This document shows, piece by piece, positions 4,680 through 51,146 of a stretch of 64,000 bases of DNA. Each line of letters starts with the position of its first letter. Positions within the stretch are counted from its first letter, which is position 1. The translations under genes were made by a program, and so were the position numbers. Location: positions 1 to 64,000 of the IMG/VR virus record IMGVR_UViG_3300036770_007547; one strand, given 5' to 3'. Below the pieces are notes generated by a model. It was not told the DNA's origin and did not search any database. It saw only the letters and a program-made list of their open reading frames with translations.

Positions 4680-4680
4680 G

Positions 4681-5055: not shown

Positions 5056-5064
5056 GAGTGCTCC

Positions 5065-5292
5065 TTAGGCGACAAAATCGTAGACAAAAGTGTAGTCGGT
5101 TTGGTAGGATCCAGCCACGCTCATCCGTACGCGATGACCAGCAGACTTGAGCAGAGCCCGGATCTCTCGTCCTTCATCGGGCATGGCACCGGTCACAAAC
5201 AAGGTACCGTTGTCGAACTCGGCACGCATGCCCGAATCCAGACGGCCGGCTATGATTTTGAGCACTTGGGTTTCGAACTTTGCTGGGGTCAT
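5065..5292 (-). CDS. hypothetical early phage protein
   Basis: GGAG RBS directly downstream of cassette promoter. Confidence 0.7.
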   Translation of the reverse strand: MTPAKFETQVLKIIAGRLDSGMRAEFDNGTLFVTGAMPDEGREIRALLKSAGHRVRMSVAGSYQTDYTFVYDFVA

Positions 5293-5322
5293 GGTTGGCT
5301 CCATATCGTTTACTATACCTAT

Positions 5323-5353
5323 ATTATACGAAATAGCCAATTTCTGGTCAACC
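5323..5353 (-). promoter_or_regulatory. early promoter cassette, copy 1
   Basis: GGTTGACC-N17-TATAAT. Confidence 0.85.
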
Positions 5354-5360
5354 GGCGTTT

Positions 5361-5639
5361 TTACACGGTTTGATCAGCTGGTTTTTTGAGCTGATGCCAG
5401 GTGAGATTTCGTTGGGCTTCGGCGGTGCCGTCGCGGAACTGGGCTAGATAGCGTTCACGCTGGCCGCGGGGTAGGTCCTGCAACATGCCCTTGATCATGC
5501 TCTGCAGGTATCCGGCTATGTAAGGCCAGGCCGAGGTCCGGTCTCCCCAGCTCGCGGCCTCGGCCTGTCGCACTGACTCGGACCAGGCATCCACGGTTTC
5601 TGATATTTCCTGGTACTGTTTGACGAAGTCGCGTGGCAT
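5361..5639 (-). CDS. hypothetical phage protein
   Basis: Start trimmed to MPRDFV; in minus-strand array. Confidence 0.7.
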   Translation of the reverse strand: MPRDFVKQYQEISETVDAWSESVRQAEAASWGDRTSAWPYIAGYLQSMIKGMLQDLPRGQRERYLAQFRDGTAEAQRNLTWHQLKKPADQTV

Positions 5640-5641
5640 GA

Positions 5642-5842
5642 CTATCCCTTGAAGGCCACCAAGGCCTGCAGGCACTCCCACTGCCCCCAGGTAAATGATG
5701 TCACACGGTCGTTGACAGTGACATCGAAGCCTTCACCGTTGTGCCACTCCGCGACTTCCATGAAGTCATGCTCACCAGCGGTATGGTCATAGGCACGCAG
5801 TTCGGTGAATCGGGCCTGGCGTTGGTATGTTTCCATGATCAT
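5642..5842 (-). CDS. hypothetical phage protein
   Basis: Coupled by GGAGTTGAATGA junction. Confidence 0.75.
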   Translation of the reverse strand: MIMETYQRQARFTELRAYDHTAGEHDFMEVAEWHNGEGFDVTVNDRVTSFTWGQWECLQALVAFKG

Positions 5843-6054
5843 TCAACTCCAAAATGTTCTTTGACATAACGATCGACCTGCTTGGTGATATCTTCTTCAC
5901 TCTCCAGATCAAGATAACGCCTGTAGAAATCTACGATAGATTCTCTTACGATCAACTCGGCGAACTTTTCAATATCCATCATTGCTGGCACAGCAGAATC
6001 ACCCCATTCACCCGCGCCCGCCTGTATAGCAAGTTCTCGGATTCGTTGGTTCAT
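5839..6054 (-). CDS. small MNxRI...EKFAELIVRE...HFGVE protein, copy A
   Basis: Paralog of 6284-6501. Confidence 0.8.
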   Translation of the reverse strand: MNQRIRELAIQAGAGEWGDSAVPAMMDIEKFAELIVRESIVDFYRRYLDLESEEDITKQVDRYVKEHFGVE

Positions 6055-6194
6055 CGGTAATCACTCCATCGCAGCCGTTTGATCCGCCAATCCATCCACA
6101 CTCCTTGAACGACCTTACTTTCACACAGCCACCAGGAACTATGATCAAGACCCATACCACCTGGGATATAACACACTCGGAAATGATCCATCAT
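6051..6194 (-). CDS. 47-aa Trp-rich hypothetical protein
   Basis: Manual ORF MMDHFRVCY...WSDYR; GGAG RBS; ATGA overlap. Confidence 0.55.
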   Translation of the reverse strand: MMDHFRVCYIPGGMGLDHSSWWLCESKVVQGVWMDWRIKRLRWSDYR

Positions 6195-6197
6195 TCT

Positions 6198-6287
6198 TCA
6201 ACTCCTTTTTCTTCCAAAATAAACACCCCAAGTAAAAACAACAAAGGTATAAGTTAATAGAATGAAAATTTTATACCATTCCATCAT
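6198..6287 (-). CDS. 29-aa single-TM peptide
   Basis: Manual ORF MMEWYKIFILLTYTFVVFTWGVYFGRKRS; coupled to upstream stop. Confidence 0.5.
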   Translation of the reverse strand: MMEWYKIFILLTYTFVVFTWGVYFGRKRS

Positions 6288-6501
6288 TCAACTCCGAAAT
6301 GATTTCTAATATGTTGAGCCGGGTCCCAATGGAGTTCGTTATGCTTTTGATACCACTCATCAGCGGCACTACAACATTCTCGAACAATCAACTCGGCGAA
6401 CTTTTCAACATCTAAATCTAATGTTCCATAGTCAATCCAATCAGAGCGTTGCATAGTGGTTGCTCCGGCCTGTTCAGCAAGTAGTCGAATTCGTTCGTTC
6501 A
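6284..6501 (-). CDS. small MNxRI...EKFAELIVRE...HFGVE protein, copy B
   Basis: Start trimmed to about MNERIR; paralog of 5839-6054. Confidence 0.75.
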
Positions 6502-6565
6502 TCATGATTCCTTCCCGGCTCGATCTTGGCACTCTTGCCAGGTCCGGGCCAGACACTCTTGCCAT

Positions 6566-6772
6566 TCAAGTGCGGTCATGGTCTTGGTCCTCGCACTCTT
6601 CGGTGATGTAGTCATTGCGGCGAGCAAACTCGGCCACATCAGCCTCGCTCATCCAGCCCAGAGCATCACGGGCCAGGCTTTCCCAATCGATCACGCCCTG
6701 CTCTGCAAGATCCAGGAGAGCCACAGTGGCCCTGCGGCTCTGGCGCGCATGTTTGGCACTCCAGGTCATCAT
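6566..6772 (-). CDS. hypothetical early phage protein
   Basis: GGAGG RBS; ATGA overlap. Confidence 0.7.
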   Translation of the reverse strand: MMTWSAKHARQSRRATVALLDLAEQGVIDWESLARDALGWMSEADVAEFARRNDYITEECEDQDHDRT

Positions 6773-15708: not shown

Positions 15709-15979
15709 TCAGGCCCACTGAATCGATGCCGGCCAACAGCATGTAGTTGGCCAGCATCCCAAAACTTTGCCGGGTCCAAGCGGCCCAGGCATAGATCGCA
15801 CAACCCAAAATAAAGAACGGATATATCAATATCAGCGGAGGGTTGGGCACGGTGGCCGCCATCCACAAACTGCAACCGATACTCAAGGCCCAGGCCAATG
15901 CTTCTAGCACGAATCTCAATGGATAACTGCGGAAGTCTTGTTTGATCCATGCAAACGTGGGTCGCAACAAATCTATCAC
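15689..15979 (-). CDS. small multi-TM membrane protein
   Basis: Three hydrophobic helices; GTGA coupling to uvsE. Confidence 0.7.
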   Translation of the reverse strand: MIDLLRPTFAWIKQDFRSYPLRFVLEALAWALSIGCSLWMAATVPNPPLILIYPFFILGCAIYAWAAWTRQSFGMLANYMLLAGIDSVGLTRMIFS

Positions 15980-17001
15980 AACACATACTCCCGAGCAAAC
16001 GAATGGCTGGCTAGGTTCTTGCCTTTGCTTTCGCACATGATGTCAAACTCTGTGGAAAAAGTGGCTGCCCACTCATTGACTGCACGATTCCAGTAGAAAT
16101 CGCTGTGTGCTCGAAGTTTGCCTTTCTTGTAGCCCCGGGCCAACAGATCAGTCAAGTCCGGAGCAACATCTACATCGTGCCCGACCAGTATGTCCTCACG
16201 GCTGACACTGTAATGTATGACCGGGCGACGCAGACCACGCCAACTGTCACGAACTTTTTTGACACGGTCATCCTGGGCACTGATGTATTCCCCGGTCTTG
16301 ATCCAGTGGTGATGTATGTCTAACACCAGAGCGAGATGGTCTGCCAGTTCGAGGCTGGCGTCGAGTCCCCAGGACATTTCGTCGTTTTCGATGGTGATAC
16401 AATTTCGCGCCTCTGGTGAGAGACGCCCAAGTGTGTGGATGATACCGGCTGGACCTTTTCGACCCGAGATGTGGACGTTGATTTTAAAGTCCTGGAAGGT
16501 ACGTCCATAACCCATCCAGCGGGCCATATCTGCATGATATTCAAACTCCTCTATGCTTCTATTTACGATGTCTTCGCTTTCGCTGGCCAGAACACAGAAC
16601 TGTCCGGGATGGAAGCTGAGCCTTACACCCAAGCGACGAGCAGCTTCGCCGATGGGCGCAAATATACGCTCGCAATGGTCCTGGATCTCCCGGCGCTGCC
16701 ACCACTCGCGCCAGCTGGGCTCGGTGTAGCCCTGCAACATCTCTGAACCCAGGCGTACCATCCGCAGTTCCGGCTCCAGAGCGCCCACGGTCTCGACCAT
16801 GCGCAAGGCCGCAGCGGCATTGTGGTTCATGATGTCCCACTGGCGTTGTTCGGCTTCCTCGGGGTGCTCGCGCAGCCAGCGCATGGTGGTTGATCTACCA
16901 TTGAGTTCACGGTTGGAGGCATTCACTTTCATGCCCCCGCATTCCGAGGGATCAGTGAGCCATTTGCATGCGAAACCGATGCGAGAGTGTGTAGTAGTCA
17001 T
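15976..17001 (-). CDS. uvsE: UV damage endonuclease
   Basis: RIGFAC, RLSFHPGQF, TIENDE, VLDIHHH, RAHSD, MCESKGKNLA. Confidence 0.95.
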   Translation of the reverse strand: MTTTHSRIGFACKWLTDPSECGGMKVNASNRELNGRSTTMRWLREHPEEAEQRQWDIMNHNAAAALRMVETVGALEPELRMVRLGSEMLQGYTEPSWREWWQRREIQDHCERIFAPIGEAARRLGVRLSFHPGQFCVLASESEDIVNRSIEEFEYHADMARWMGYGRTFQDFKINVHISGRKGPAGIIHTLGRLSPEARNCITIENDEMSWGLDASLELADHLALVLDIHHHWIKTGEYISAQDDRVKKVRDSWRGLRRPVIHYSVSREDILVGHDVDVAPDLTDLLARGYKKGKLRAHSDFYWNRAVNEWAATFSTEFDIMCESKGKNLASHSFAREYVL

Positions 17002-29120: not shown

Positions 29121-29797
29121 GTGTTTGGAACTCCCAGATGTTTTTTTACCAATTGCGATATCACACCATGTCCCTGGATGCTGGGATGCCAGTTGTCTTG
29201 ATCGGTCACGAGATTGTTGGATCGGCAATACTCCATCATGCCGCCGTGACCTTCGAGGTCCACTCTCCGGTGTGCTCGTGTGTTCATGAAGTCCTGGAAC
29301 CAGGGCGACAGATTACGGGCAGTGTGCTCCAACATGTACATGAAATGATAATCAAATCCACGAAGTTCTAGATAGCTGATCATTCCCATCAAAGCCAGTT
29401 CATTGGTCCACTCTGCGGGCGGTATGCCCATGCGTTTGAGATGTTTGACTGGCCTGCATCCGTGTGTGCGCCAGTTCACCCCCAACACCGAAGACCAAGG
29501 AAAATTGGCACTGCCAGTGACGTCGTCGGCCTCGCACATCACATCCACTCGAGCCATGTCACTGATGTTGAACAATACCCGGGTATGTTCGGGACGAAAA
29601 TGTGGTTGCCGTTGCAGAAACATCATGACATTGTTGGCAACGGCGAAATTGCCACCGCCTGACAGGCCCAAATTGGCGTACATGTCAATGCCATCCAGCA
29701 AAAAATGCGACCAAACCTGGGGATCACGTCGAGCGGTATCTAGATCACTGCTACCAGCAGTGAAACTGCAACCAGCCACCAACAATGTGTTTATCAA
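29117..29797 (-). CDS. SGNH/GDSL-like protein
   Basis: AGCSFT, NLGLSGGGN, DNWHP. Confidence 0.7.
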   Translation of the reverse strand: MINTLLVAGCSFTAGSSDLDTARRDPQVWSHFLLDGIDMYANLGLSGGGNFAVANNVMMFLQRQPHFRPEHTRVLFNISDMARVDVMCEADDVTGSANFPWSSVLGVNWRTHGCRPVKHLKRMGIPPAEWTNELALMGMISYLELRGFDYHFMYMLEHTARNLSPWFQDFMNTRAHRRVDLEGHGGMMEYCRSNNLVTDQDNWHPSIQGHGVISQLVKKHLGVPNT

Positions 29798-31176
29798 ACC
29801 TTTTCACCTGATTCGAAACCGCGGAATCTCACGAATCTCGGGAATCGGAGGCTGTAACTTCCGTCTTGGTTTTGTGTGATGGCATCAGCTTCGACTTCAA
29901 CCACATGACCAAGAAGCGCCAATCGATCCAGCCAATACTGATCACGATCACTGTCACTGAAGCCACTGCCAACATTGACCCGGATGTCACGTCCATTGTC
30001 TTTCCCTTCGCAAATCATGGCGCCGAGGCGGCCGGCATTGCGACCGGTACCTTCCTCGAAACCCGTGATGTTGAGATCCACTGTGATGGTGGGCTTCCAT
30101 TTCATCCAAAAGCTGGTGCGTTTGCACTCGTAGGGAGCGTCCACGGCCTTGATCATGATGCCTTCGAATCCCTCTTTCACAGCATCCTCGGCGAATCTGC
30201 GCATGATGTCATGTCCCTCGGCTGTGTCGAGATCCACTTCCAGGCCCGGCATGATGCGCAGGCAATCGGTCTGTTCTTCGAGACGCTCACGAGCCTGGTC
30301 CAGGATGGCCAGTCGTTTGTGTTGCTGTGCGTTCCAATATCCGCGCTCGAAGTCGTCCAAGGGAATGATGTCAAAGATATGATAGATCATGCCATCTGTT
30401 CGAGCATCGCTCTTGCGATGTGCCTGGCGCATGAGCTTTTGGAAACTCTCGCCCACCACTTCTCCGTCTAACACGAATCGGCCATTTGAATTCAAGCCAT
30501 GCCGGAACAATGATCTTGCGTTTTCGATGGCTTCTGCGATCTGCGGAAAGTTTTCAAACGCCTTGCCGTTGCGACTGTACAATGTGGCAGAATTGCCATT
30601 GACAACTGCCAGCACACGAACGCCATCCAATTTGCACTCCAGACGCTTGCGGCCTTTCAGCTTGCGGGGTTGATCTGTGCTGTCCTGTGCCAGCTGGCAA
30701 GTGAACACTGGGATGGCCCACTCGGTGTTCTTGCACACCTTGTTGATGGTTTTTTCGCTGACGCCGCAACGGAGATCCTTGATCAACACTCGGCGAGCCA
30801 AGCCGTTCCACTCATCGCTGTCAAACTCCTGCATGATTTCCTCGATGGCTGCTCGAGCGTTGCCGCCTGTGACACTTCGTGTGCGCAGGCTTTCACACAA
30901 GGCCCAGAATCGCACCCAAGGATTGGGTCGGCCTTCAAGGCCCGAGCTTTCGGGCACCTTCTTGACGTTGTAAGCGAAGTAGGGATTGTAGGCCAGATAC
31001 GCACAGTACAAAAAACACTGGGCATTGGCCGATCCCAGTTTGGCGGCCATGACAGCCTTTTCGATCACACTTTCTTTGTGCAACCGGCTGTCTGAACTTT
31101 CGAGATCTCTAATCCAGTCACATGCCACTTTTAAGCCATTGAACTCCGTGGACGACCAGGGTCTTGATGTTTTCAT
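29794..31176 (-). CDS. ATP-dependent DNA ligase
   Basis: KLDGVR, LDGE, IFD, EGIMIK, WMKWK, VGSGF, LRFPRF; GGAG RBS before MKTS. Confidence 0.96.
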   Translation of the reverse strand: MKTSRPWSSTEFNGLKVACDWIRDLESSDSRLHKESVIEKAVMAAKLGSANAQCFLYCAYLAYNPYFAYNVKKVPESSGLEGRPNPWVRFWALCESLRTRSVTGGNARAAIEEIMQEFDSDEWNGLARRVLIKDLRCGVSEKTINKVCKNTEWAIPVFTCQLAQDSTDQPRKLKGRKRLECKLDGVRVLAVVNGNSATLYSRNGKAFENFPQIAEAIENARSLFRHGLNSNGRFVLDGEVVGESFQKLMRQAHRKSDARTDGMIYHIFDIIPLDDFERGYWNAQQHKRLAILDQARERLEEQTDCLRIMPGLEVDLDTAEGHDIMRRFAEDAVKEGFEGIMIKAVDAPYECKRTSFWMKWKPTITVDLNITGFEEGTGRNAGRLGAMICEGKDNGRDIRVNVGSGFSDSDRDQYWLDRLALLGHVVEVEADAITQNQDGSYSLRFPRFVRFRGFESGEKV

Positions 31177-31266
31177 AGAGATTCTCCAATTCAAAAAATG
31201 CATTGTCGGGGTCTTGCCATAACAGCATCAAGAACGCGCCCAAAGCCAAGTACACGAGTATTCGTA

Positions 31267-32873: not shown

Positions 32874-35090
32874 TTAGTTGAGCTGGGTGTCTAGCTGGAT
32901 ACCGGCTTGGTTGAGGCGCTGGATGTTGCGTCCTTCGCGGAGACTGGCCAGCACGCTCTGCCCGCTGAGTGTGGCTGTGTTGGCCAAGGCAGTGACGATT
33001 TCGTTGGCACCGCCTGGCGAGATGTCAACCCCGTATTCGTGCAGGGCTTCGGCCCAGATCATGGTACTGCTCTGGCTGTTGTTGCCCAACTGATTGAAGT
33101 CAACTTCGGCCAGGGCAAGATTACCGACATTGCGTTTCACATAGTCGGCCACCGCGATCCAAGTCTGGTTCAGTGCGTCACACTGGGTGGGATACTGTGA
33201 GACGATGTTTGCAATGGCTGTGGCCGCCGCTGGTATCAGTCCCGCAGTCATGGCATCCTCGCGAGCAGCCGCCAACGAAGCAGCCGGCGACGCTGGATAT
33301 GTGCCAGCACCGGGAAGACCCGATGGTATCACGATCTGATAACCGGTGTCTCCGGGCATGGGGTAATCCGGTGTTTCCAACACATAAGAAGTGGTGGTCA
33401 GAGCATAGTCCATCACGGTGTACACGCCGTTGCTGGTGCTTGATGCGCTGCCTCCGTCGGTGATCAAGGCAGCGAAGGCATTCAGCTGTTGCATCTGTCC
33501 CAGTACCGATACTGTAGAATCTATGTCAGCATTGAGTCCTATGCCACTGGGCACTCCGATCACATCACTGAGCAGTACACGACCGTTGGCGCCAGTTCCT
33601 TCACCCAGGCTCTGTTCATAGAAGTTGCGCACCGAATTGGGGATTGGCACTGACAGCGTGGATATGGCCGAAAGATCATCGTTGGTTTCCACTGTGATCA
33701 TGGCTCGGGCCAAGGCCGCGAGATTGGTGCTGGCGATTTGTTTGACTTGCTGTAGACTGCGTGCCAGGCATTTGTTGGCCAGGGCTTGATCTGATGGTAT
33801 GATCTTGCTCAATGTTTCCAGCCCGGTTTGATCATTGGCGCCAACATAGGCTTGTACCGGATCGGTGGCAAACACCGACACGAGATTGGTGTTCACGCTC
33901 CAGTTTGATCCCGATCCTAGATAGATGTTGTACAGTCCGTTCACAGTGGGACACAACAAGGTGTAATAGCTCTTGGGAAATATGCGCCGAGGGTCCAGCA
34001 GCTGGGCCATGTTGGTGATGCCCGAAGCGGTCACACCCAGCACTGTCAGTATCTGATCGAGATCTTCGCCGGTCACTGACAGCATGACTTGATAGGCCAA
34101 TTTTTCTTGTTCGTTGGTGAGAGCATTGGTACCAAAACTGAGTTCCCGGATGGCCGATTCATCGATGCCGGCTTCCAGCAAGAGATCTGCCACGTTGGGC
34201 AGTGTACCCCCAGTGATCAATCCAATCTGCGCCAACAGCGCACCAGGAAATCCCAGCTCGTCGAGATTGGCTAGATTTATCAGCTGGCCCAGGGCCGACA
34301 TGTCCGTGGACAACGACAATAGATTGTTGCTGACTTGATTGAGTCCACCAGTGGTCAAGGTATTCATGCCACCTTGGCTGGTGCTGAATGTGCGTGCTAG
34401 AACTGTGCTGGCCTCGCCGGCTTCGATCACCGAGTTGCTTTGGAAAACATAGCCCTGGGCTGTGCCAAAAATCTGGCAGAATCGACTGAGATCACCGTTG
34501 CCTAGTATGCGTTCTCCGGTGGCTGTGATCACAGAGGAGAATGCCGGGTACACAGTCAGTGTCACGGTCCATGTTGGATCTCCCACCAGGCTCCAGTATG
34601 TGGGATCGGTGGGAAGATTGCCAGTGGTCGAGCCCAGTGCTTTGTAGATCTTGCTGTTGTACAACACTCGGTCATCGGTGTCGTAGGTGGTTTCATCCGA
34701 GTACGGCAACGACGGTGCTTGGCCTTGTGTGTCTGTGGTGGCCGAAAAAACACGTCCTTGGTAAATGACTTGGCTGCCAGTGCTGTAAAAGATCTGGCTG
34801 TTGTAGTTGGGCGCCGGATAAAGTTGCGACAGAGTGTAGGTACTGGGCGCATTGTTGGTCAATGCCGGCAAGTTGGTGCTGCCCAGAGCTCGCAATTCAT
34901 CCAATGCTGCTGGTGCATTGGTGGTGCATTGTGTGACGATGTTGTCGTAGTCATCGATCACTGGTTCATTGATGTAGGCATCAAGAGCAGTGCCCAATCC
35001 AGCACTGATCACCAGCGCCACCCCGATGTCAGCGGGTGGATTGGCCAGCAGTCCAGCACCGGCTATGGTTTGTACACTAGACAGCGACAT
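32874..35090 (-). CDS. virion structural protein with two CBM5/12-like modules
   Basis: YSTGSQVIYQGRVF and YDTDDRVLYNSKIYKA; adjacent to PAAR gene. Confidence 0.7.
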   Translation of the reverse strand: MSLSSVQTIAGAGLLANPPADIGVALVISAGLGTALDAYINEPVIDDYDNIVTQCTTNAPAALDELRALGSTNLPALTNNAPSTYTLSQLYPAPNYNSQIFYSTGSQVIYQGRVFSATTDTQGQAPSLPYSDETTYDTDDRVLYNSKIYKALGSTTGNLPTDPTYWSLVGDPTWTVTLTVYPAFSSVITATGERILGNGDLSRFCQIFGTAQGYVFQSNSVIEAGEASTVLARTFSTSQGGMNTLTTGGLNQVSNNLLSLSTDMSALGQLINLANLDELGFPGALLAQIGLITGGTLPNVADLLLEAGIDESAIRELSFGTNALTNEQEKLAYQVMLSVTGEDLDQILTVLGVTASGITNMAQLLDPRRIFPKSYYTLLCPTVNGLYNIYLGSGSNWSVNTNLVSVFATDPVQAYVGANDQTGLETLSKIIPSDQALANKCLARSLQQVKQIASTNLAALARAMITVETNDDLSAISTLSVPIPNSVRNFYEQSLGEGTGANGRVLLSDVIGVPSGIGLNADIDSTVSVLGQMQQLNAFAALITDGGSASSTSNGVYTVMDYALTTTSYVLETPDYPMPGDTGYQIVIPSGLPGAGTYPASPAASLAAAREDAMTAGLIPAAATAIANIVSQYPTQCDALNQTWIAVADYVKRNVGNLALAEVDFNQLGNNSQSSTMIWAEALHEYGVDISPGGANEIVTALANTATLSGQSVLASLREGRNIQRLNQAGIQLDTQLN

Positions 35091-39616: not shown

Positions 39617-40045
39617 TTATCCTAACAAATGGCGAACGACTTCGCTGCTGATTTTCTTACCGGGTTTGTTTTCTAGTGATTGGATATTTAACAACTGCCT
39701 GGGACACCAATTCAGTATATATTTTCCTTGGTTCACCAGGACTAAATTGCTGTCATTGCATTGAGCCAATTCGATATCGCTTATGTCGGGCCGTTCTAAC
39801 ATGATTACAGTATACATGATGCCCACGCCGCGAGCAAGATCACAATACATGTCATCGGCCAGAAGATCCCAGGGACCAGGCCAATCCCGATGATCGTCCC
39901 AGTGTAGATAGTGATTGACCATGGGAGCCTGCCACCACCAATCGTTGATGGCCAACAGCGATCTTTCCAGATCGCCGTCATGACATGACTGCCTTAGGGC
40001 ATACCACTCCTTGAGGCGCTCTTCGAATCGATTATTCCACATCAA
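39617..40045 (-). CDS. hypothetical phage protein
   Basis: 142-aa ORF; WPGPWDLL...YC motif. Confidence 0.7.
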   Translation of the reverse strand: MMWNNRFEERLKEWYALRQSCHDGDLERSLLAINDWWWQAPMVNHYLHWDDHRDWPGPWDLLADDMYCDLARGVGIMYTVIMLERPDISDIELAQCNDSNLVLVNQGKYILNWCPRQLLNIQSLENKPGKKISSEVVRHLLG

Positions 40046-41634
40046 TCGAGATTGGATATAGAATAGCTGATAGAGGCAGAAACACCAGTGGCTGTGGTGG
40101 TGTAATCAACTGTGAGTTGATTGCTGACTTGTGTGACGCTGAGGGCCACACCGATATCGGCGTTTTGTGTATATTCATCACTCCAAGTCAAAGGTGCTGA
40201 GCTGTCATCGGGTCCGGCCGTGATTGACAGTTTACCGTAACGCACATCGGTGCCGCGTCGGATACGATAATTGATTTCCAGGCTCTGTATCTCTTCGCTG
40301 TTGAGCTCGATGACCGGAGTCGCTGTGAACGTGGCATTTTCCAAGATGGCAGATATGCCTGCGGTTCGTTGATAACTGCCCATCTGTTGCAAGGTGCTGC
40401 CAACAAATGTTTCACCGGTGGTGACTCGTATATTGGGGATGAGTCGAGCATTGGCCGGCGATCGAGCGAACATGTCATTGATACTGACACTGGATTCATT
40501 GGTGAAAGATATGGCTGGAAAGGTGGGAGCTGTGGATCCCACACTGTTGCCCACGTTGTAAAAAGTGTTGTAGGCCGAAATGTTCAAGCTCACGTTCTGG
40601 AAGATCAAGGCCTCGGCGAAGATGATGTCAAACATGTTGTGCAACACGCGGAATCCCGTGGGACCTTCTCCGCCTTCGGCGTTGGCCTCGAGGTACACGG
40701 CCTGATACAGCGTGCTGAATCTGCTGTCGTTGACAGTGACACCGCGTATGTTTTGATCGGTCTTCATGGCGTAGGTACAATTGGTGAACGAGCACTGGGA
40801 AAAGTTTACCTGTATCACTGGCGTGGCGTAGCTGCTGAAACGCACGCATGCCACATCGTCGGGCACTTCGCTGCCCGAGTCTTCCAGCGCCAGCTGTGTG
40901 AGATTGCCCACAAAGCCCACTTGATTGAACTGGCACTGCGTGGCCGATTCAATCAGGAACACATCAGTGGCTCCCTGGCTTTCAAAACTCATGCCCGATA
41001 TCTCGATGTAGCGTGGTGCTGTGGCACCGTTGGTGCCCACGTTGATACCGCTTTGCTGTTTGCTGTCTACATATCGAGCCGTGTAAGCGGCATAGGTGTC
41101 GTCGCCGCGTTTTTGCAGCTGGATGATGGTACAGTTGGCACCTTCGCCCACCAACTTGGCATAGGTGGGTATGTTGATGGTGTCAGTGACTCGATAGGTA
41201 CCGGCTGGAAAATATAGGGTACGGCGTATCTGTGTGTTGGTTTCACGACAGTAGAGTTGGAACAAGGCACGATTGATGGCCGCAGTGTCGTCGGTGAGAC
41301 CATCTCCGGTGGCACCAAAGTCACGCACTGATGCGAAATCATCCAATTTGGCTTGCACTGTACGCACCACTGGATCACTGGCACTGGGACCGGTCTGGGC
41401 TGAATAGCCCACAGTGATGTCTTCATAGGTGTAAAAACTGTAGGCCGTGATATCACTGAATTCGGTGAGGATTTCGGTGTTACCGATCACCGGTGCGCCC
41501 TCGTCCAGGGTTCCGTTACCTATAAACAGTCGGCGACTGTCCAGACACCACCCAAACTCGCCGCCCGAAAGCTGCGGCAAATTTTCAGTGAGTCCTTTGC
41601 GATTGGTGATCCGCGATATCTGTACTATAGCCAC
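40042..41634 (-). CDS. tail fibre/tailspike-like protein with beta-helix domain
   Basis: Mtd_N-like LPQLSGGEFGWCLDSRRLFIGNG; pectate-lyase-3-like SVRDFGATGDGLTDDTAAI, YFPAGTY. Confidence 0.8.
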   Translation of the reverse strand: MAIVQISRITNRKGLTENLPQLSGGEFGWCLDSRRLFIGNGTLDEGAPVIGNTEILTEFSDITAYSFYTYEDITVGYSAQTGPSASDPVVRTVQAKLDDFASVRDFGATGDGLTDDTAAINRALFQLYCRETNTQIRRTLYFPAGTYRVTDTINIPTYAKLVGEGANCTIIQLQKRGDDTYAAYTARYVDSKQQSGINVGTNGATAPRYIEISGMSFESQGATDVFLIESATQCQFNQVGFVGNLTQLALEDSGSEVPDDVACVRFSSYATPVIQVNFSQCSFTNCTYAMKTDQNIRGVTVNDSRFSTLYQAVYLEANAEGGEGPTGFRVLHNMFDIIFAEALIFQNVSLNISAYNTFYNVGNSVGSTAPTFPAISFTNESSVSINDMFARSPANARLIPNIRVTTGETFVGSTLQQMGSYQRTAGISAILENATFTATPVIELNSEEIQSLEINYRIRRGTDVRYGKLSITAGPDDSSAPLTWSDEYTQNADIGVALSVTQVSNQLTVDYTTTATGVSASISYSISNLD

Positions 41635-43835: not shown

Positions 43836-44678
43836 TTAGCGCCTTTCGCGGCCCAGTGTTTCTTCGCCGCCTTCGGTGTCTTCTTCGTCGTCGGTTGCAA
43901 GATTGGCATCGAGATCGAGATCCGCGCCAAGGTCATCGGCTGCAGGTCCAGCATCGAGATCGGCTCCTAGATCATCTCCATCGGCTGCAGGTTCGGCGCC
44001 GGGTACCACAGGTGCTTGACCAGTCAATACTCCCTGGGCCGATTCCATTTCAGTTTTTCCGCTCTGCACAGCCTGCAGCAGATTGGTGAGTGCAGCCGAT
44101 GCCGAACTCTGGAACTGAGTGGCTTGATCAGCGCCCATGTCATTCTTGATGGAGTCTGACAGCGCAGGAAGATCTTTGAACTGCATCTCTGAAATTTCTT
44201 CCATCATCTTCTGTATGCGATCGATCATGTCTTGTGCGGCCAGCACCACTTGTGCTTGTTGCAGCTCGCTCTCTTTGACCATGCGCTTCATTTTGCGGCC
44301 CTCTTTCTTCATGAGAGCTATAGCGGTCATGGTTTTTTGCTCATCGGGATTGAGATTCTGTCCCTTTTCGGCCTTTTGCATGATCTGCTTGGTCTTGGGA
44401 TCATTGACATCTATGGCCATGGGAGCATCAAGCTCGTCGATGCGTGCCGACAGCGCCTGTTCCATGATCATCAACTGTAGATAAGCAGGATTCTTTTCGC
44501 TGACATGGAATCTAGGATCTCTGCGATGCTCGGACAAGAGTCCGCGCACGCGATTCAGCATGCCTGCGGCACGACGCGGTCCCACGTTAGAAAGATCAAT
44601 CTCTCGTCCGGATTGACTTTCTAGAATTTTGGTAAATTGTTCGGTTTGGCGCTGGGCGCCGAGTTCGTGCAATTTCAT
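43836..44678 (-). CDS. prohead core/scaffold-like helical acidic protein
   Basis: LHE and VKE motifs; acidic tail ending LGRERR. Confidence 0.6.
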   Translation of the reverse strand: MKLHELGAQRQTEQFTKILESQSGREIDLSNVGPRRAAGMLNRVRGLLSEHRRDPRFHVSEKNPAYLQLMIMEQALSARIDELDAPMAIDVNDPKTKQIMQKAEKGQNLNPDEQKTMTAIALMKKEGRKMKRMVKESELQQAQVVLAAQDMIDRIQKMMEEISEMQFKDLPALSDSIKNDMGADQATQFQSSASAALTNLLQAVQSGKTEMESAQGVLTGQAPVVPGAEPAADGDDLGADLDAGPAADDLGADLDLDANLATDDEEDTEGGEETLGRERR

Positions 44679-45135
44679 CGTTGAATCCTTTTATTTGCCA
44701 GTATTTAGCACGCCACACACATTTTTCCAGCTGTGTTTTGATGTGCTTGAGCTTGATACGCCGATCCTCTAGTTTGCTGAGCACTGTGAGACGGCGTTGT
44801 CGGTCCTTGAATCCCGGTAACATGCTGGTGCGTGTCTGTATGTCACAATCCATCCTACCGTATTCCTGGTCCAAGAATTTTATTTCCTGTGACAGTTTGA
44901 ATTGTCCGTATTTCTCAGCGATGCAATAGCTGACCGCTGATCTTGACGAGTAAAATCTACCCTGCAAAACATCGGCCTTGAACACCGATATCATGCCGTC
45001 ATCGCGCTTGAGCGACCATTTTCCAAACAGTTCAAATCCATCTTCGGTGGCCAAGATCATGTTTTCCACCGCCAAGTCAAGCTCGGGCGACAGCACACGT
45101 TCTAATTTTTTTGCGAGCTCGGCGTCTTGCATCAT
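44596..45135 (-). CDS. hypothetical protein
   Basis: ATGA-coupled 179-aa ORF. Confidence 0.7.
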   Translation of the reverse strand: MMQDAELAKKLERVLSPELDLAVENMILATEDGFELFGKWSLKRDDGMISVFKADVLQGRFYSSRSAVSYCIAEKYGQFKLSQEIKFLDQEYGRMDCDIQTRTSMLPGFKDRQRRLTVLSKLEDRRIKLKHIKTQLEKCVWRAKYWQIKGFNDEIARTRRPAPNRTIYQNSRKSIRTRD

Positions 45136-45908: not shown

Positions 45909-46373
45909 TTAAGCGAGCTGGAAGCCAGGCTCAGTGACAGTGGTGCCAGAAACATCAACACCGCGCACAGTGCCCGAGCTGTCAGTGATTTGCACGTTGC
46001 CCAGAGCTTGCAGAGCCGACTGCAGAGTTGCAGCGGTCCATGCGTCTTGGGGATACACAGCAACACTGATCTGTCCGGTCGTAGCACCTTCGACTTGATA
46101 CATGGCGATGGTGGCAGTCTCTTGGATAGCCTGATTGATGTTCTTGACAACACCGGGATCAAACACACCAGAGGTGTATGTTCCAAGCTCGGCGCGCAGA
46201 TCGATCGCAGTAGCGCCAGTATCCTTGACCAGCACTTTGAAGAAGTCCAGCTTGGGGCCGGCCATCTGTACCAAAGCGTCGGTAGAACCGATGTTGCCGG
46301 TCTGGCTACCGTTGTTGATGTCCAGTGCAAATACTGGTTGCGAGTCACCGTTAAAGGGATTGAAAACAGCCAT
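45909..46373 (-). CDS. probable abundant virion protein
   Basis: Own TATAAATA promoter, AGGAGA RBS and terminator; G/A/T-rich. Confidence 0.7.
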   Translation of the reverse strand: MAVFNPFNGDSQPVFALDINNGSQTGNIGSTDALVQMAGPKLDFFKVLVKDTGATAIDLRAELGTYTSGVFDPGVVKNINQAIQETATIAMYQVEGATTGQISVAVYPQDAWTAATLQSALQALGNVQITDSSGTVRGVDVSGTTVTEPGFQLA

Positions 46374-46426
46374 TTTATTTCTCCTAGTTTGTGGGCTTTT
46401 GCCCTACACTTATTTATACCTTTGAT

Positions 46427-48370
46427 TTAATTCTGGGCTGTTGAGGTGTTTTTGGACTGGGATTTCCGTGCCCCAAAACCGCCTGCCATCCTGCTCACCA
46501 GCTTGGCGCGACCAGCCGGCGTGGCCAACACCCACCCTTCTTGACCGGGCTGTTGTTGATCCAGCTGGCGTTGTAGATCGATTTTGAGACGATGCACTAG
46601 ATTCCATGTGTCAAACGCTGCTTGCATGCCCTGCAAGTTGGCGCCTGTGAGATACTCGGCTATGTTGCGATATTTTTGTGGGGTCACGTTGGCCTCGAGC
46701 CATTTACCAAAGTCGGCCGGAGTGGCACGACTGTAATCTGTGCCTTTGAGGCTGTTGATGAATCGTTCCATCAATGCCGGGAGATCTGTGATTCGTTGAT
46801 CCCTCAGCGCAGTGGGATTGAAAAGACTGTTCATGGCCTGGGCACTGGTGCCCGAGCTCAATGCCTTGATCTGTTGCACCAACTGTTGATTGGGTTCTAG
46901 GTTTTTCAATCCCGGAACAGTGGCGCCGGCCACCATGAGTCCAGGCACCGACTTCAGCATGGCACCGGGATCGGTCACAGGTTGTTCGGCGCCCGCAGGA
47001 TCATCCATGCGTGTGTGTATGGCCAATCCTATGCGGCTGTTGCGTATGCGGCGACCCAACTCGCTGTCACGTGGAATACGATACACTATGCCGTCGTGTT
47101 TGTTGGGCTGGAAAACCAAGCGTCCATCTTCATCGCGCACCGGATCCGACGAGCTGTACAACAAGTCACCTTTGAGATAACCACGAAAGTCCCGGGGTGT
47201 GGCAGCTTCGAGATAGGGCCAAAGCTCGCGGTACACCGGCACCAGTTTTTCCACGCGATCAGCGGCTTTGCCTTGTGCGGCTGCTCGCTCATCTCGCTGT
47301 GCCATGATGGATGCTATTTCATCGGGACTTTTTGCCAGGCCCGATCCGCCAGCGGCTGCTGCACCACCTTTGTCGGTGAGCATGAATTGGCCACGGTCGT
47401 CACGACCAAATATCACAGCCGGGCTGCCATCCCACTTGATGGTGGCATGCTGTTCGCTGTTTTTGGCCGTGTCATTCACGATGGCCAAGGCTTCTTGTGC
47501 GCCTGCTGCACCTTTCTGGAACACTAGATCTTCTATGTAGGGTATGCGTGGACTTTTGGATTCCTGGAGACGTTGATTTTCCACCAGGGGCTGCATGCCT
47601 TGATTCACGATCCTGTCACGCAAACGCGCCATGATGTTGACTTCGTTGTATTCGGTGTAGACGTCTGTGGTCTCTGCTATGGGAGTTCCAGCCCGTTCCA
47701 TGTGATCTCGAAAGTCAGCCAACTTGGCATCTCGCTGGGCATCGTTTTTGAGCGCGGCCATGATGGTCTCCACGGATCGAAGATCTTTGGCCGTGGCCTG
47801 TGGATTCAACAGCATCTTGGCTATCTTATCGGGATCGTCGGTGATCAATTCATTGGTGGATCTATCCATCAACCCGGTGTTTTGATTGAGTTTGTAGCCC
47901 AGGGCCTTGCCCACGCTGTTGATGAGTATGTTGCGGCTGGCACCTTTGAAATCACTGTCGGGCGGTGATCCTGCCAGCATAAACTTGGCCCATTCCATCT
48001 TGGGCACAAACATAAAGTCGGTTTGGACGAATCCCGAATCAGCGCGGCCACGTATGGGTGTGAGGAAATGCACTGATATGCCGGACTTTTTGACCCAATC
48101 TCGCGGATCCTGGCCGTGCTGGGTCACATAGTCCGACAGCAGTCGTGCCAATTCGTCTTTTGACATCTGATTGGAATCCACGCCCAGGTCAAGGTCGCCT
48201 GAGGTGGGCTTCTGCCCGGTACTGCCCAGCATGTTTGCCTGCAAGGGAAGACCAGTCACAGTCTCCAACCAACTCACTGTGGGCTTGATGTCTGCTAGAT
48301 TGATGCGTTGGGTGCGAGCATTTCCCTGGGCATCACGGAATACATTTCCACCTTCATTCAGATTCTGCAC
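46427..48370 (-). CDS. Pol-beta-type nucleotidyltransferase fused to ATP-dependent RNA-ligase-like domain
   Basis: LGSTG...GDLD...QTD; KWDG, KGDLL, EGWV, KLVSR. Confidence 0.75.
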   Translation of the reverse strand: MQNLNEGGNVFRDAQGNARTQRINLADIKPTVSWLETVTGLPLQANMLGSTGQKPTSGDLDLGVDSNQMSKDELARLLSDYVTQHGQDPRDWVKKSGISVHFLTPIRGRADSGFVQTDFMFVPKMEWAKFMLAGSPPDSDFKGASRNILINSVGKALGYKLNQNTGLMDRSTNELITDDPDKIAKMLLNPQATAKDLRSVETIMAALKNDAQRDAKLADFRDHMERAGTPIAETTDVYTEYNEVNIMARLRDRIVNQGMQPLVENQRLQESKSPRIPYIEDLVFQKGAAGAQEALAIVNDTAKNSEQHATIKWDGSPAVIFGRDDRGQFMLTDKGGAAAAGGSGLAKSPDEIASIMAQRDERAAAQGKAADRVEKLVPVYRELWPYLEAATPRDFRGYLKGDLLYSSSDPVRDEDGRLVFQPNKHDGIVYRIPRDSELGRRIRNSRIGLAIHTRMDDPAGAEQPVTDPGAMLKSVPGLMVAGATVPGLKNLEPNQQLVQQIKALSSGTSAQAMNSLFNPTALRDQRITDLPALMERFINSLKGTDYSRATPADFGKWLEANVTPQKYRNIAEYLTGANLQGMQAAFDTWNLVHRLKIDLQRQLDQQQPGQEGWVLATPAGRAKLVSRMAGGFGARKSQSKNTSTAQN

Positions 48371-48611
48371 GTCGAACGGTCCTTACAAATTTGGTGGGAT
48401 CTCGGTCACGTATGGCATTCAATAATTTACGAGCGAGGTTTTCGGCTTGATCGGGCGGAAAGCTGGTTTCGATTTGTTCGATCAATCTAATGGCCGATGC
48501 GATGATGTTGCTGGCCCGGCTCTCGATGATGTAACGGCGATCTCGATCTGCGTATTTGTTTTCGTAGATCGTGTCCAGTTCTTCGAGGATGCTCCGTGTC
48601 TTTTTTTGCAT
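48354..48611 (-). CDS. hypothetical late protein
   Basis: KTRSILEEL; AATAAATA upstream. Confidence 0.75.
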   Translation of the reverse strand: MQKKTRSILEELDTIYENKYADRDRRYIIESRASNIIASAIRLIEQIETSFPPDQAENLARKLLNAIRDRDPTKFVRTVRRAESE

Positions 48612-48630
48612 GATTTTGGCCCCGATATAT

Positions 48631-49716
48631 TTATTGATTCTCGGGCGCCAAATAAACTGCCTTTATTAACGCACCACCGGTGTCGCGTATTTCCTGTGGC
48701 CAGCTTTCGACCATGTCCCAGCAACGATCGCGAACATGGTCAGACATGAGCAGGTCACGATTGGCCAGCAGTCGCGGCATCATGCTTGATCTCAGCTGGG
48801 CCGCACGCTCTCGATCCCGCAACAGATCTAGATTGGATTTCACGGCCCACCAACAGCGTTCAAACAGCGTGTCACGATACTGATAGCTGTGATCTATCAC
48901 ATCATCAAAGATGTCAAATCCCAGTTTCTCCCATTCAGCGGCTTGACCATAACCACCCACCCATATAGGAAGCGTGAGCCCCATCACGGAGAACGCGGTT
49001 TTTTCTGTGAATACTGCACCTCGATCATAGGCCACCGATTCGGTGATGAGAGATATCGCAGATTTTTCAAAAATGTCATGCAGGCCATTCACCCAACTCC
49101 AGGTATTGCCACCATAGTATTTCCAGCTGAGCGGGTCATCTTTGTCTTTGTCGGGATTTTCCGGGGGCATTTCGCCGGTGTATTCGATCCAACGCTGGGG
49201 CAATTCCACTGGTGCCAACAAAAATCCCCGCTGTCGTTGTGTCATCATGTCTTGCCAATCCAATGACTCCAGTTCTTGTATGATGGTGCTCATGTCGTAG
49301 CCACGGAACTTGCCGCTGTACGAATATGTGCAGTCCAGATCAAACATTTCCTGCAGTTTGAGCATGAGATAACGATTCACTTGCTTTTTGTTGATCATGA
49401 AATTGCAGGCGTATTCGGTCGTGACCGAATCGATCAAAGGGATGCGATCTTGTCGGAACATGCGTATCTGCTGTACCAACCAAGCCGGACAGGTATACAC
49501 AGGAGGACCACCTGGCCACTCAATGGCGCTCCAGAGATCGTTGACCACGTAACCAGCTCGCCCACGCTGGGGCCAGAATCGATCCAGGGCCGCGGTCTGG
49601 AACGCATCATAGACATGGAAAACATCGTTGCTGTCTATCACATCTACATCATGCAATGTTTCGTGGGGAATAGATGTTTCCCAACCTATGAATGTGGTGA
49701 TGAGTCTAAGTGTCAT
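48631..49716 (-). CDS. GT10-like glycosyltransferase, paralog 2
   Basis: ITES...FTEKT...PIWVGG...GFDIFDDVIDHSY. Confidence 0.6.
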   Translation of the reverse strand: MTLRLITTFIGWETSIPHETLHDVDVIDSNDVFHVYDAFQTAALDRFWPQRGRAGYVVNDLWSAIEWPGGPPVYTCPAWLVQQIRMFRQDRIPLIDSVTTEYACNFMINKKQVNRYLMLKLQEMFDLDCTYSYSGKFRGYDMSTIIQELESLDWQDMMTQRQRGFLLAPVELPQRWIEYTGEMPPENPDKDKDDPLSWKYYGGNTWSWVNGLHDIFEKSAISLITESVAYDRGAVFTEKTAFSVMGLTLPIWVGGYGQAAEWEKLGFDIFDDVIDHSYQYRDTLFERCWWAVKSNLDLLRDRERAAQLRSSMMPRLLANRDLLMSDHVRDRCWDMVESWPQEIRDTGGALIKAVYLAPENQ

Positions 49717-49739
49717 AATGTTTGTATTTATTGACAGTG

Positions 49740-51146
49740 TCAACCAGCTTTGATCTTGCCCAAAAGCTGCTTGAGTTTGGCGCTCTGCACTTCGGCAGTG
49801 ACCTTGCCAGTGTCGGGGTTGTCATCATTATCACCGCTGTCGTTGACACGACTGGTGCTCTTGATACTGTCAAGTATGTTGGGTTTACGCACCATCCCGG
49901 TGCTGCCACTCGAATCCTCTTCGCCTAGGTCGCGTATGCGCAAACTGTCGATGTCAAATTCAAGCTCGACTTTCTGCCCCACGCCCGAACTCGATCGTGT
50001 TTTCATGAGCTGTAGCTGATAGCGCCCGCGTTCGCGCATGGCCCGGCTGGTAAAGATACCAAACACATTGTCTGCGGTGTTGATCTTGGAGATACCCCCG
50101 GAAATGTGACTGTGATCAAACTCGATCTCTTCCACGGCTGCTCGATTCAACTGCGATGCTGTGACAAACAGCACATTGAGTTCTTTGGCTAGATTTCTCA
50201 GTTCTTCGCTCACATACTTGTCTTTGACGAACAAGTCGTTGGGCGATACCTTGGCGCTCACGGGCATCAAGAGATCTAGATAATCGATGCACAAGAAATC
50301 CACGCGCATGCCGGTCTGTATCTGCAGTTCTTTGAGATAGGCCCGTATGTCATTCACAGTGCTCTGTGCCGGCATGTACTTGATTCTCAGTTTACCGGCT
50401 TTCTTGGCCAGCATCTTGATCTTCATCTCCACGGTGTCGAGATCTTTGAAGATGTCTCGAGCCGCGGTATTGGTCATCATGCTGTCGATGCGATATCCGC
50501 AGAGGCCTTCTGATAGTTCCAGCGTGATGTACACGCCCGAAAGCCCGGCTTGCGTCCAGTTCACTGCGAGATTTTGCATGAACAGGCTCTTGCCCGAACC
50601 CGAACCACCTGCAAAGATCTGCAGCTCGCCACGATTGAACCCGCCATACAACAGTTTGTCTAGCGCAGGCCATCCTGTGCTGTTCTGTCCGTTGTTGCTC
50701 TTCAAGGACATCAGCCTCGCTCGCGGGTCATCAAAGTAGTCTGTGCCCATGTCTCGAGTGAGAGATATCTGCACAGCATCCTTGATCAGCTTTTCCACGG
50801 GACCAAAGTCACCTTTTTCCAAGAGATCCGCGCTCTTGAGGATGGCACGTTCCAGCTCCTGCCTGCGGGTAAAGGCTTCAAACTCTTCCATGAACCAATC
50901 GAAGTGCCCGTCGTTGAGATCGGGCACTTCGCTCAATCTGATGCCAGTGGCCGCCGAGATCTGCATGCGGTCGGGCATGGTTTTGTGATCGTCGCAGTGC
51001 TGTTTTATGAACAGCGCGGCCGGTCGTAGACTGCGATCAAAGTTTTCGGGATTGTAGATGTTTTGAACACGCACATAGCTCTGTGCGTCCATCAACATCA
51101 TTTCAAGGAACAGTCGTTGCACATCCACACTGTAGTCTTTTAACAC
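49740..51146 (-). CDS. replicative DnaB/gp41-like helicase
   Basis: GGSGSGKS, ITLELSE, IDYLDL, TASQLNR, MKTR. Confidence 0.95.
   Translation of the reverse strand: MLKDYSVDVQRLFLEMMLMDAQSYVRVQNIYNPENFDRSLRPAALFIKQHCDDHKTMPDRMQISAATGIRLSEVPDLNDGHFDWFMEEFEAFTRRQELERAILKSADLLEKGDFGPVEKLIKDAVQISLTRDMGTDYFDDPRARLMSLKSNNGQNSTGWPALDKLLYGGFNRGELQIFAGGSGSGKSLFMQNLAVNWTQAGLSGVYITLELSEGLCGYRIDSMMTNTAARDIFKDLDTVEMKIKMLAKKAGKLRIKYMPAQSTVNDIRAYLKELQIQTGMRVDFLCIDYLDLLMPVSAKVSPNDLFVKDKYVSEELRNLAKELNVLFVTASQLNRAAVEEIEFDHSHISGGISKINTADNVFGIFTSRAMRERGRYQLQLMKTRSSSGVGQKVELEFDIDSLRIRDLGEEDSSGSTGMVRKPNILDSIKSTSRVNDSGDNDDNPDTGKVTAEVQSAKLKQLLGKIKAG

Follow-up and report, generated by a model that had tools for sequence, protein, structure and literature searches.

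A minimal PolX-like domain joined to a DUF6267 ligase-like domain in a T4-like jumbo phage: a candidate fill-and-seal repair enzyme

The window analyzed here, the first 64 kb (64,000 nucleotides) of the 222,775-bp IMG/VR viral contig IMGVR_UViG_3300036770_007547 (completeness judged 64%), contains the gene for a 647-amino-acid (aa) protein that carries the motifs of two different kinds of nucleotidyltransferase (NTase). The gene is present as a single copy in the contig, which also encodes a Gp23-family capsid protein (334 bits); the source is an uncultured T4-like jumbo phage. The question raised by this locus is what a single polypeptide does with two such sets of motifs. An earlier note on the same DNA had recognized the fusion and suggested a capsid-packaged polyprotein, processed into two injected enzymes. 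In the present analysis the protein is read as a single, unprocessed, bifunctional fill-and-seal repair enzyme that is expressed late and has DNA as its more likely substrate. A probability of about one half is assigned to this reading, which draws on directly established features (motifs, conservation, predicted folds, domain coupling, synteny and a promoter motif) and from them infers the activities, the substrate and the timing.

Two catalytic domains in one chain

The gene and its elements are as follows, with residue numbers referring to the 647-aa protein.

46427..48370, minus strand: whole gene in the open reading frame (ORF) list, 647 aa (P0001), GTG start at 48370, stop codon at 46427-46429
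47669..48349, minus strand: N-terminal domain, residues 8-234, predicted family-X-polymerase-like palm and thumb with an extra helical tail (about 200-234)
48188..48229, minus strand: Pol-beta signature LGSTGQKPTSGDLD, residues 48-61, with the GS loop and catalytic D59 and D61 (G49, S57, G58, D59, L60 and D61 invariant)
48017..48025, minus strand: QTD, residues 116-118, third catalytic carboxylate D118 (invariant)
47552..47668, minus strand: inter-domain linker, residues 235-273, with LVE and LQE (drawn from a pLDDT below 50 and from conservation)
46484..47551, minus strand: C-terminal domain, residues 274-629, DUF6267, predicted divergent covalent NTase (polynucleotide-ligase fold) without an OB domain
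47426..47437, minus strand: motif I KWDG, residues 312-315, with the predicted AMP-accepting K312 (from conservation)
47159..47173, minus strand: KGDLL, residues 400-404, candidate motif III (G and D invariant family-wide)
47102..47113, minus strand: FQPN, residues 420-423, candidate motif IIIa (F near-invariant, P and N invariant)
46553..46888, minus strand: family-specific helical insertion of about 110 aa, residues 495-606, between motifs IIIa and IV (predicted secondary structure)
46529..46540, minus strand: motif IV EGWV, residues 611-614 (E, G and V invariant)
46490..46504, minus strand: motif V KLVSR, residues 623-627 (V and R invariant, K near-invariant)

Every motif that the earlier note had quoted was found in the protein, and its coordinates for the gene are exact. 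The catalytic motifs are conserved beyond chance, being invariant in 26 homologues of 55-78% identity. The invariant positions in this alignment are G49, S57-G58-D59-L60-D61 and Q116-T117-D118 in the Pol-beta half, and K312-W-D-G315, K400-G-D402, L404, F420, P422-N423, E611-G-W-V614, K623, V625 and R627 in the ligase half. More than 3,800 homologues were detected in metagenomes, the best 120 of which span 91-100% of the protein length, and the start of the protein (VQNLNEGGNVF) aligns with homologue starts of the form MKLLEGGNVF.

An AlphaFold2 model built on the 26-sequence alignment (mean pLDDT, predicted local distance difference test, 83.8) consisted of two confident domains, residues 8-234 and 274-629, separated by a low-confidence linker (235-273). 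The N-terminal domain has the alpha/beta palm of Pol-beta NTases followed by the C-terminal thumb subdomain of PolX enzymes. Its sequence contains the superfamily pattern hG[GS]x(9-13)Dh[DE]h as L48-G49-S50 ... D59-L-D61-L, with D118 as the third carboxylate; in a diverse set of 33 N-domain sequences, conservation of these residues is 90% or higher. In Foldseek searches against the PDB, all of the 50 top matches were PolX enzymes (probability 1.00). Matches in AFDB and BFVD were labelled 'DNA polymerase beta', 'DNA polymerase beta thumb domain' or, from giant viruses, 'DNA polymerase family X', and some related clusters in the ESM Atlas carried PF14792 or PF14791.

The 8-kDa dRP-lyase domain and the HhH fingers of the Pol-beta core are missing, with only about 20 residues preceding the palm. 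The stretch YKGxxRN...G(Y/L)KLN resembles the Pol beta helix-N/hairpin region, and DPDx(I/V)AxxLLGP, which comes after it, resembles the C-terminal PolX signature 'E(E/D)IFxxLGLxYxxP'. Judged from the predicted fold, the domain is best described as a minimal PolX of the African swine fever virus (ASFV) type, with palm and thumb but without the 8-kDa domain or fingers. The earlier note had assigned the Pol-beta part correctly, while its generic 'nucleotide tagging' is here refined to a family-X-like activity: a PolX-like palm and thumb argue for templated gap filling over tagging. A 2022 review of phage DNA polymerases has no family X entry, and the PolX-like reading, if true, would add family X polymerases to the repertoire of tailed phages.

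The C-terminal domain belongs to DUF6267 (PF19782), matching it at 76.9 bits over residues 396-628 (cut-off 27 bits), and homologues match the full profile. DUF6267 is the only Pfam assignment of this domain, which is listed as unknown in PHROGs; NCBIfam returned nothing for the whole protein. When refolded alone on a 25-sequence alignment, the domain reached a pLDDT of 90.6 and a predicted template modelling score of 0.87, and it has the adenylyltransferase-domain fold of covalent NTases. All of its 23 top VIA matches were polynucleotide ligases, and capping enzymes ranked lower. The list comprised NgrRnl (6.6), Trl1 (6.5), T4 Rnl2 (6.3), Lig III (6.0), Lig IV, archaeal Rnl3, T4 Rnl1, and the T4 and ASFV DNA ligases, and the top Foldseek matches in PDB and AFDB were likewise ligases.

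Motif I is followed in the right order by collinear motifs III, IIIa, IV and V, namely GDLL(Y) at 401-405, FxPN at 420-423, EG(W/Y)V at 611-614 and KxVxR at 623-627, motifs III and IIIa being assigned from position and conservation rather than from a residue-level structural alignment. KxDG, GDLL, FxPN, EG(Y/W)V and KxVxR were also kept in a wider alignment that included stand-alone C-domain proteins and a cyanophage gene (21-45% identity), stand-alone relatives retaining the ligase-type motifs at identities as low as about 30%. Across the wider DUF6267 family, the cyanophage member included, the K, D and G of KxDG are at least 90% conserved. Pfam searches of the 647-aa protein gave no match to the ATP-dependent DNA ligase pair PF01068 and OB PF04679, and PF09414 (Rnl2-type RNA ligase) was matched neither by this protein nor anywhere in the contig. 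On the basis of its modelled fold, the DUF6267 domain is most likely a very divergent polynucleotide ligase that stands outside the catalogued ligase families. A full-text literature search for 'DUF6267' retrieved no paper.

The fusion of a Pol-beta-superfamily NTase with a ligase-type covalent NTase, as proposed in the earlier note, was thus borne out by motifs and by the fold predicted for each domain. Scanning 149 representatives of 50%-identity clusters with hidden Markov models (HMMs) of both domains gave the following architectures.

N-domain then C-domain in one chain: 55 (27 with extra domains)
C-domain then N-domain in one chain: 7
N-domain only: 61
C-domain only: 26

In several of the N-then-C fusions (for example P0135, P0138 and P0140) the domains abut without a linker. 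Both modules are of kinds that work on the ends of polynucleotides, and their repeated fusion in both orders suggests that they carry out consecutive steps on one substrate.

Coupling was also seen between separate genes. In the rhizobial jumbo phages Phosso and Atu_ph07, a ligase-like gene of 324-411 aa lies immediately before the PolX-like gene and overlaps it. In this ligase-like gene KLDG is near the N-terminus and EGVV...K..(V/F) about 220-260 residues further on, as in the DUF6267 layout. By HMMER these genes (Phosso gp446 and Atu_ph07 gp(4013-4987)) were not significant members of DUF6267, and only the arrangement of their motifs, their position and their size speak for kinship. In PA5oct gp256 the motifs are arranged likewise (KIDG...EGYV...VKIVDK), and the protein has a significant partial HMM match and a structural match in BFVD. 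The PA5oct virion proteins gp258 and gp257 were tested as the two domains and rejected, gp256 being the relative. No PolX-like domain was found beside DUF6267 in the cyanophage proteins S-PM2d138 (C-terminus), S-PM2d140 and S-WAM1 gp164; in BFVD the C-terminus of S-PM2d138 is labelled cytidylyltransferase-like.

Substrate and role of the protein

In the proposed mechanism, the N-terminal domain would extend the 3'-OH at a gap or recessed end by one or a few nucleotides, through two-metal-ion catalysis at D59, D61 and D118. The C-terminal domain would adenylylate itself on K312 of motif I, pass the AMP to the 5'-phosphate and seal the resulting nick, and the family-specific helical insert would probably grip the substrate in place of the missing OB domain. 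Such an enzyme would probably act at a late stage of infection, before packaging, and mend nicks and short gaps in phage DNA that has been replicated or damaged, either by clearing them from concatemers or by repairing damage. Duplex DNA is favored as the substrate because the N-terminal domain resembles PolX up to and including the thumb, the part that reads the nascent base pair, because the link between the module and the replicative helicase recurs in distant lineages, and because one relative architecture carries a PD-(D/E)XK nuclease.

The concept of a polymerase or NTase fused to a ligase is already known. PgVPolX of Phaeocystis globosa virus has been shown biochemically to combine polymerase, lyase and NAD+-ligase activities in one chain, which fills and seals gaps in base excision repair (BER) (PMC5537341). 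Like PgVPolX, the phage protein carries a family-X polymerase module at the N-terminus and a ligase module at the C-terminus of one polypeptide. However, PgVPolX (1093 aa) comes from a giant virus rather than a tailed phage, and possesses a full Pol-beta core with the 8-kDa dRP-lyase domain and a canonical NAD+-dependent LigA-type ligase, whereas the phage protein has palm and thumb only, and a DUF6267 domain without OB, HhH or BRCT domains; sequence similarity between the two was undetectable. ASFV Pol X also lacks the 8-kDa lyase and fingers. Compared with it the phage domain has about 20 extra residues at the N-terminus and about 35 at the C-terminus, and in ASFV the polymerase and the ligase, which has an OB domain, are separate proteins, unlike the single chain found here. 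Bacterial LigD, the non-homologous end-joining ligase-polymerase-phosphoesterase, likewise unites polymerase and ligase for fill-and-seal break repair, but its polymerase has an archaeo-eukaryotic primase-type fold, not that of PolX, and its ligase is a canonical ATP-dependent one with an OB domain.

The best structural neighbors of the C-terminal domain are nick-sealing RNA ligases (T4 Rnl2, kinetoplastid REL1 and Naegleria NgrRnl), which have KxDG and no OB domain. Motif IV of Rnl2 is EG(Y/W)V-like. The phage protein is similar in its way of working to PolX, to DNA and RNA ligases and to RlaP (discussed below), but is a catalogued member of none of those families.

Several results weigh against a DNA fill-and-seal enzyme. 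In Pfam searches at E <= 10 the protein matched neither PF14792 nor PF14791, and among 33 N-domain relatives one had a sub-threshold match to each of these families (E 0.016 and 0.22). Single-sequence and profile HMM searches with both domains against PDB sequences gave matches at chance level only, PolX not being among them. The phage already encodes a canonical ATP-dependent DNA ligase (29794-31203), and comparison of the ligase-domain profile with that enzyme by hhalign gave a probability of 0.5%, which is not significant. The absence of an OB domain, with only about 20 residues (one helix) after motif V, leans towards RNA, as do the nearest structures and language-model neighbors of the C-terminal domain (Rnl5, Trl1, Rnl2; PF09414), where RNA ligases score marginally better. 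For an AP endonuclease, PF03372 was absent and no clear candidate was found. Moreover, the late timing is derived from a sequence motif only, and the recurring link to an adenylyltransferase described below is unexplained by the fill-and-seal model. The ORF at 15976-17001 has only a weak match to PF01261 (AP_endonuc_2, the endonuclease IV/xylose-isomerase TIM barrel) of 14.9 bits, below the cut-off, at 16279-16653 on the minus strand; if real, it would be a BER partner for a PolX-ligase enzyme.

The main alternative, which corresponds to the functional part of the earlier note's proposal but leaves out packaging, is the repair of RNA (tRNA), in which the Pol-beta-type domain would restore one or two nucleotides at the 3' end of a cleaved RNA and the Rnl-like domain would reseal it, countering anticodon nucleases of the host or other RNase defences. 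This reading is considered possible but rather unlikely. It is favored by the missing OB domain and the canonical DNA ligase mentioned above, by an AFDB match to an 'RNA ligase domain-containing protein' (E 2e-5), and by PF09414 RNA_ligase in 60 of 100 named language-model neighbor clusters, although the domain resembles the Rnl2 type only in structure and in language-model comparisons. HAD-type phosphatases (NT5C, DUF2608), the usual end-healing partners, are found fused to some homologues, and the phage encodes seven tRNAs and a transfer-messenger RNA (tmRNA). A Pol-beta NTase with an RNA ligase is also a described repair pairing of jumbo phages, in the form of RlaP (PF10127), including T4 NrdC.11, which follows the same restore-then-ligate logic and is common in large phages (PMC7824862; bioRxiv 10.64898/2025.12.29.696909). 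RlaP adds one or two nucleoside monophosphates to damaged RNA (bioRxiv 10.64898/2025.12.29.696909).

However, PF10127 was matched neither in the 647-aa protein nor in the contig or five related phage records, and PF09414 genes were likewise not found in the contig or those records. The known partners of RlaP are RtcB, Rnl1 or Rnl2, not DUF6267. The region after the palm matches the PolX thumb, whereas PfRlaP is described with a helical C-terminal domain, and the N-terminal domain as a whole resembles the palm and thumb of PolX rather than RNA-specific NTases. The tie to the replicative helicase and the nuclease fusion also point away from RNA, and the tRNA genes lie about 170 kb away. If the substrate were nevertheless RNA, the protein would represent a new RNA-repair counter-defence module; if the DNA fill-and-seal reading is true, it would be a new compact enzyme of possible biotechnological use.

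It is improbable that the protein is no nucleic-acid enzyme at all, with NTase domains acting on small molecules or proteins, for example in the synthesis of NAD+ or nucleotide derivatives together with a partner, or in protein nucleotidylation. Extra domains fused in the homologues include a HIGH-superfamily adenylyltransferase (CTP_transf_like), whose weak best matches are nicotinamide mononucleotide and nicotinic acid mononucleotide (NMN/NaMN) adenylyltransferases, HAD phosphatases or nucleotidases (NT5C, DUF2608) and DUF5661. In the Atlas, the N-domain is fused to a PD-(D/E)XK nuclease and DUF6267 to a Cu/Zn superoxide dismutase. DUF6267 is persistently fused or adjacent to the NMN adenylyltransferase (NMNAT)-like protein ('cytidylyltransferase'), as in S-PM2 (4995-6770), S-WAM1 (5251-6306) and the homologues P0141 and P0155; in the present phage the NMNAT-like gene (contig 68191-68490) is not adjacent to the 647-aa gene. 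These partners, the NT5C nucleotidase-type and superoxide dismutase fusions among them, would suit a small-molecule role, and no sequence-level link to any characterized ligase or polymerase was found. On the other hand, both folds are those of enzymes acting on polynucleotide ends, the PolX thumb is kept, and every top match of the C-terminal domain is a polynucleotide ligase. The NMNAT-like partner would be explained equally well by a ligase that uses NAD+, and may mean an NAD+-dependent ligase with local recycling of its cofactor.

Operon, late-promoter motif and the packaging idea

The features around the gene are listed below.

49740..51146, minus strand: DnaB-type replicative helicase, upstream of the module in every lineage examined
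49725..49731, minus strand: ATAAATA just past the helicase stop codon and before a 370-aa ORF, probable start of the late-transcribed cluster (motif scan)
48628..48634, minus strand: ATAAATA, T4-type late-promoter-like, 22 nucleotides upstream of the 85-aa ORF (motif scan)
48354..48611, minus strand: 85-aa ORF upstream of the 647-aa gene, phrog_11854 (ORF list, PHROGs), with a 17-nucleotide overlap with its start, same operon
46411..46418, minus strand: TATAAATA immediately downstream of the 647-aa gene (motif scan)
45909-46373: next ORF downstream of the 647-aa gene, preceded by TATAAATA

All lineages examined, namely the present phage, a 195-kb relative, the cyanomyoviruses S-WAM1 and S-PM2, Phosso, Atu_ph07 and PA5oct, have the module downstream of the gene for the replicative helicase. 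In S-WAM1 and S-PM2 the gene order is gp41-MazG-...-DUF6267-cytidylyltransferase, and in Phosso, Atu_ph07 and PA5oct homologues of the 85-aa ORF come after the helicase gene, as part of a conserved cluster. When the region of the 647-aa gene was compared with phage records by megablast, there were zero matches.

Across the genome, 43 of 77 TAAATA occurrences (56%) were located within 60 nucleotides upstream of a gene start on the same strand, compared with 3-35% for hexamers of the same composition. The typical spacing was 22-33 nucleotides, with a GGAG-like ribosome-binding site between motif and start, and (A/T)TAAATA was present at 43 of 244 crude gene models. Many of the genes downstream of TAAATA are very large and presumably structural. 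A late-promoter-like motif also heads the cluster in S-PM2 (AATAAATA, 20-25 nucleotides before d138), S-WAM1, Phosso, Atu_ph07 and PA5oct. Going by position and spacing, (A/T)TAAATA behaves as a T4-type late promoter in this phage, and the 647-aa gene appears to lie in an operon driven by it. Further minus-strand (A/T)TAAATA sites in the window are at 44707, 45422 and 41664. In S-PM2, a tRNA T-arm-like sequence (GGGAGTTCGACTCTCCC) is found upstream of the DUF6267 gene (about 4860-4920), just before the late-promoter motif.

The suggestion of a 'TAAATA-driven late/head cluster' in the earlier note held for the late-promoter motif, with ATAAATA upstream of the operon, but not for a head cluster. 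The genes for gp23 and the gp21-type protease lie about 90 kb from the 647-aa gene, at contig positions 135-138 kb. Its neighbors encode the DnaB-type helicase, a primase, ribonucleotide reductase (RNR) subunits, a Cas4-like exonuclease, NifU, a tail-spike-like protein and small ORFs, two of which match PHROGs labelled 'virion structural protein'.

According to the packaging idea, the polyprotein would be directed to the prohead, where the gp21-type protease would cut the linker after (I/L)xE, and the two enzymes would be injected with the DNA. The premise stands, in that the phage encodes such a protease (Peptidase_S77/PF03420, contig 137791-138216, 87.8 bits), and the noted tripeptides LNE (residue 4), IAE (231), LVE (262) and LQE (268) are all present; LVE (262-264) and LQE (268-270) are conserved and lie in the disordered linker. 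The late-promoter motif at the operon, the small neighbors with 'virion structural protein' matches and the syntenic PA5oct cluster, which is rich in virion proteins detected by mass spectrometry, would also fit. In addition, the N-termini of stand-alone DUF6267 proteins (MKIIELLTE..., MNIFEILTE...) have what we take to be a faint resemblance to the T4 capsid-targeting sequence.

Nevertheless, cleavage at (I/L)xE was not supported. The protein contains six such sites, compared with 3.8 +/- 1.7 in composition shuffles, of which 15% reach six. DUF6267 has a conserved N-terminal edge, L-x-E-(G/A)-x-R-I-x-H-x-E-D, to which LQE belongs, and LxE was found at this edge in 171 of 197 family members whatever their architecture, including 17 of the 20 in which DUF6267 is at the protein's own N-terminus. 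The linker-less and reversed fusions and the distant head module argue in the same direction. Two relatives from cultured phages lack an annotation as virion proteins that genes near them have: S-PM2d138 is labelled 'hypothetical' while the nearby S-PM2d145 is a 'virion structural protein', and PA5oct gp256 has no electrospray tandem mass spectrometry (ESI-MS/MS) note while six of its neighbors carry one; the omics paper on PA5oct numbers its genes differently from these gp numbers. The 647-aa protein is therefore probably not a capsid polyprotein cut into injected enzymes, a reading that is very improbable.

The otherwise disordered linker contains a conserved amphipathic helix, (F)LARLRDRIVNQGM, at residues about 244-259 (window 47600-47640, minus strand), with (A)RLRDRIVNQG at about 247-258. 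The RLRDRIVNQG helix travels with the ligase domain, occurring also at the N-terminus of stand-alone DUF6267 proteins, which is a further point against processing in the linker. It could be a docking motif for the replisome or another partner.

Cyanophage ligases and other genes of the contig

DUF6267 was detected in 466 phage records, mostly of Kyanoviridae, and is among the commonest unannotated genes of marine T4-like phages. Cyanomyoviruses lack gp30, and a 2010 review left open whether 'distant homologues ... have not yet been identified' (PMC2984593). PF01068 and PF01653 were absent from S-WAM1, S-PM2 and P-SSM2, and by these profiles, in these three genomes, DUF6267 is the only ligase-like gene in cyanomyoviruses. 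A literature search for S-PM2d138 found nothing.

It is tentatively suggested that DUF6267 could be the missing DNA ligase of T4-like cyanomyoviruses and their relatives, an OB-less branch of the superfamily encoded just after gp41-MazG. PolX would then fill gaps in the jumbo relatives, and both would form a phage-encoded module for maturing and repairing lagging strands or nicks, a function that the host had been supposed to supply, with the NMNAT-like partner perhaps recharging NAD+. No description was found in the searchable literature of DUF6267 as an enzyme of ligase fold, of its joining with a minimal PolX in thousands of sequences from phages, or of its standing as the only ligase-like gene of cyanomyoviruses. 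Recognition of this ligase fold and of its coupling to a minimal PolX gives the question of the missing cyanophage ligase a concrete candidate.

Some other features of the contig were also recorded. The 370-aa ORF between the helicase gene and the 85-aa ORF (window 48631-49743, minus strand) had no match in Pfam, PHROGs or NCBIfam. Its listed TTG start is probably upstream of the true start, because ATAAATA lies inside the first codons. The 179-aa ORF (44596-45135) and the 280-aa 'virion structural' ORF (43836-44678) overlap by 83 nucleotides as listed (44596-44678); the TAAATA at 44707 suggests that the start of the 280-aa ORF is real and the overlap true. This 280-aa neighbor was considered as a counterpart of S-PM2d145 and rejected, similarity being absent.

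A tail-spike/pectate-lyase-like protein (window 40042-41634, minus strand) and a 738-aa protein with a chitin-binding CBM_5_12 module (window 32874-35090, minus strand) are encoded amid genes of nucleotide metabolism (RNR, exonuclease), an unusual arrangement in which structural and metabolic genes of the window are interleaved. Outside the window, ARAGORN predicted a tmRNA at contig 215689-216081 (minus strand) with the tag ANDEVFALAA, followed by seven tRNA genes (Leu, Pro, Thr, Met, Arg, Lys and Ile) clustered at 220.1-222.6 kb.

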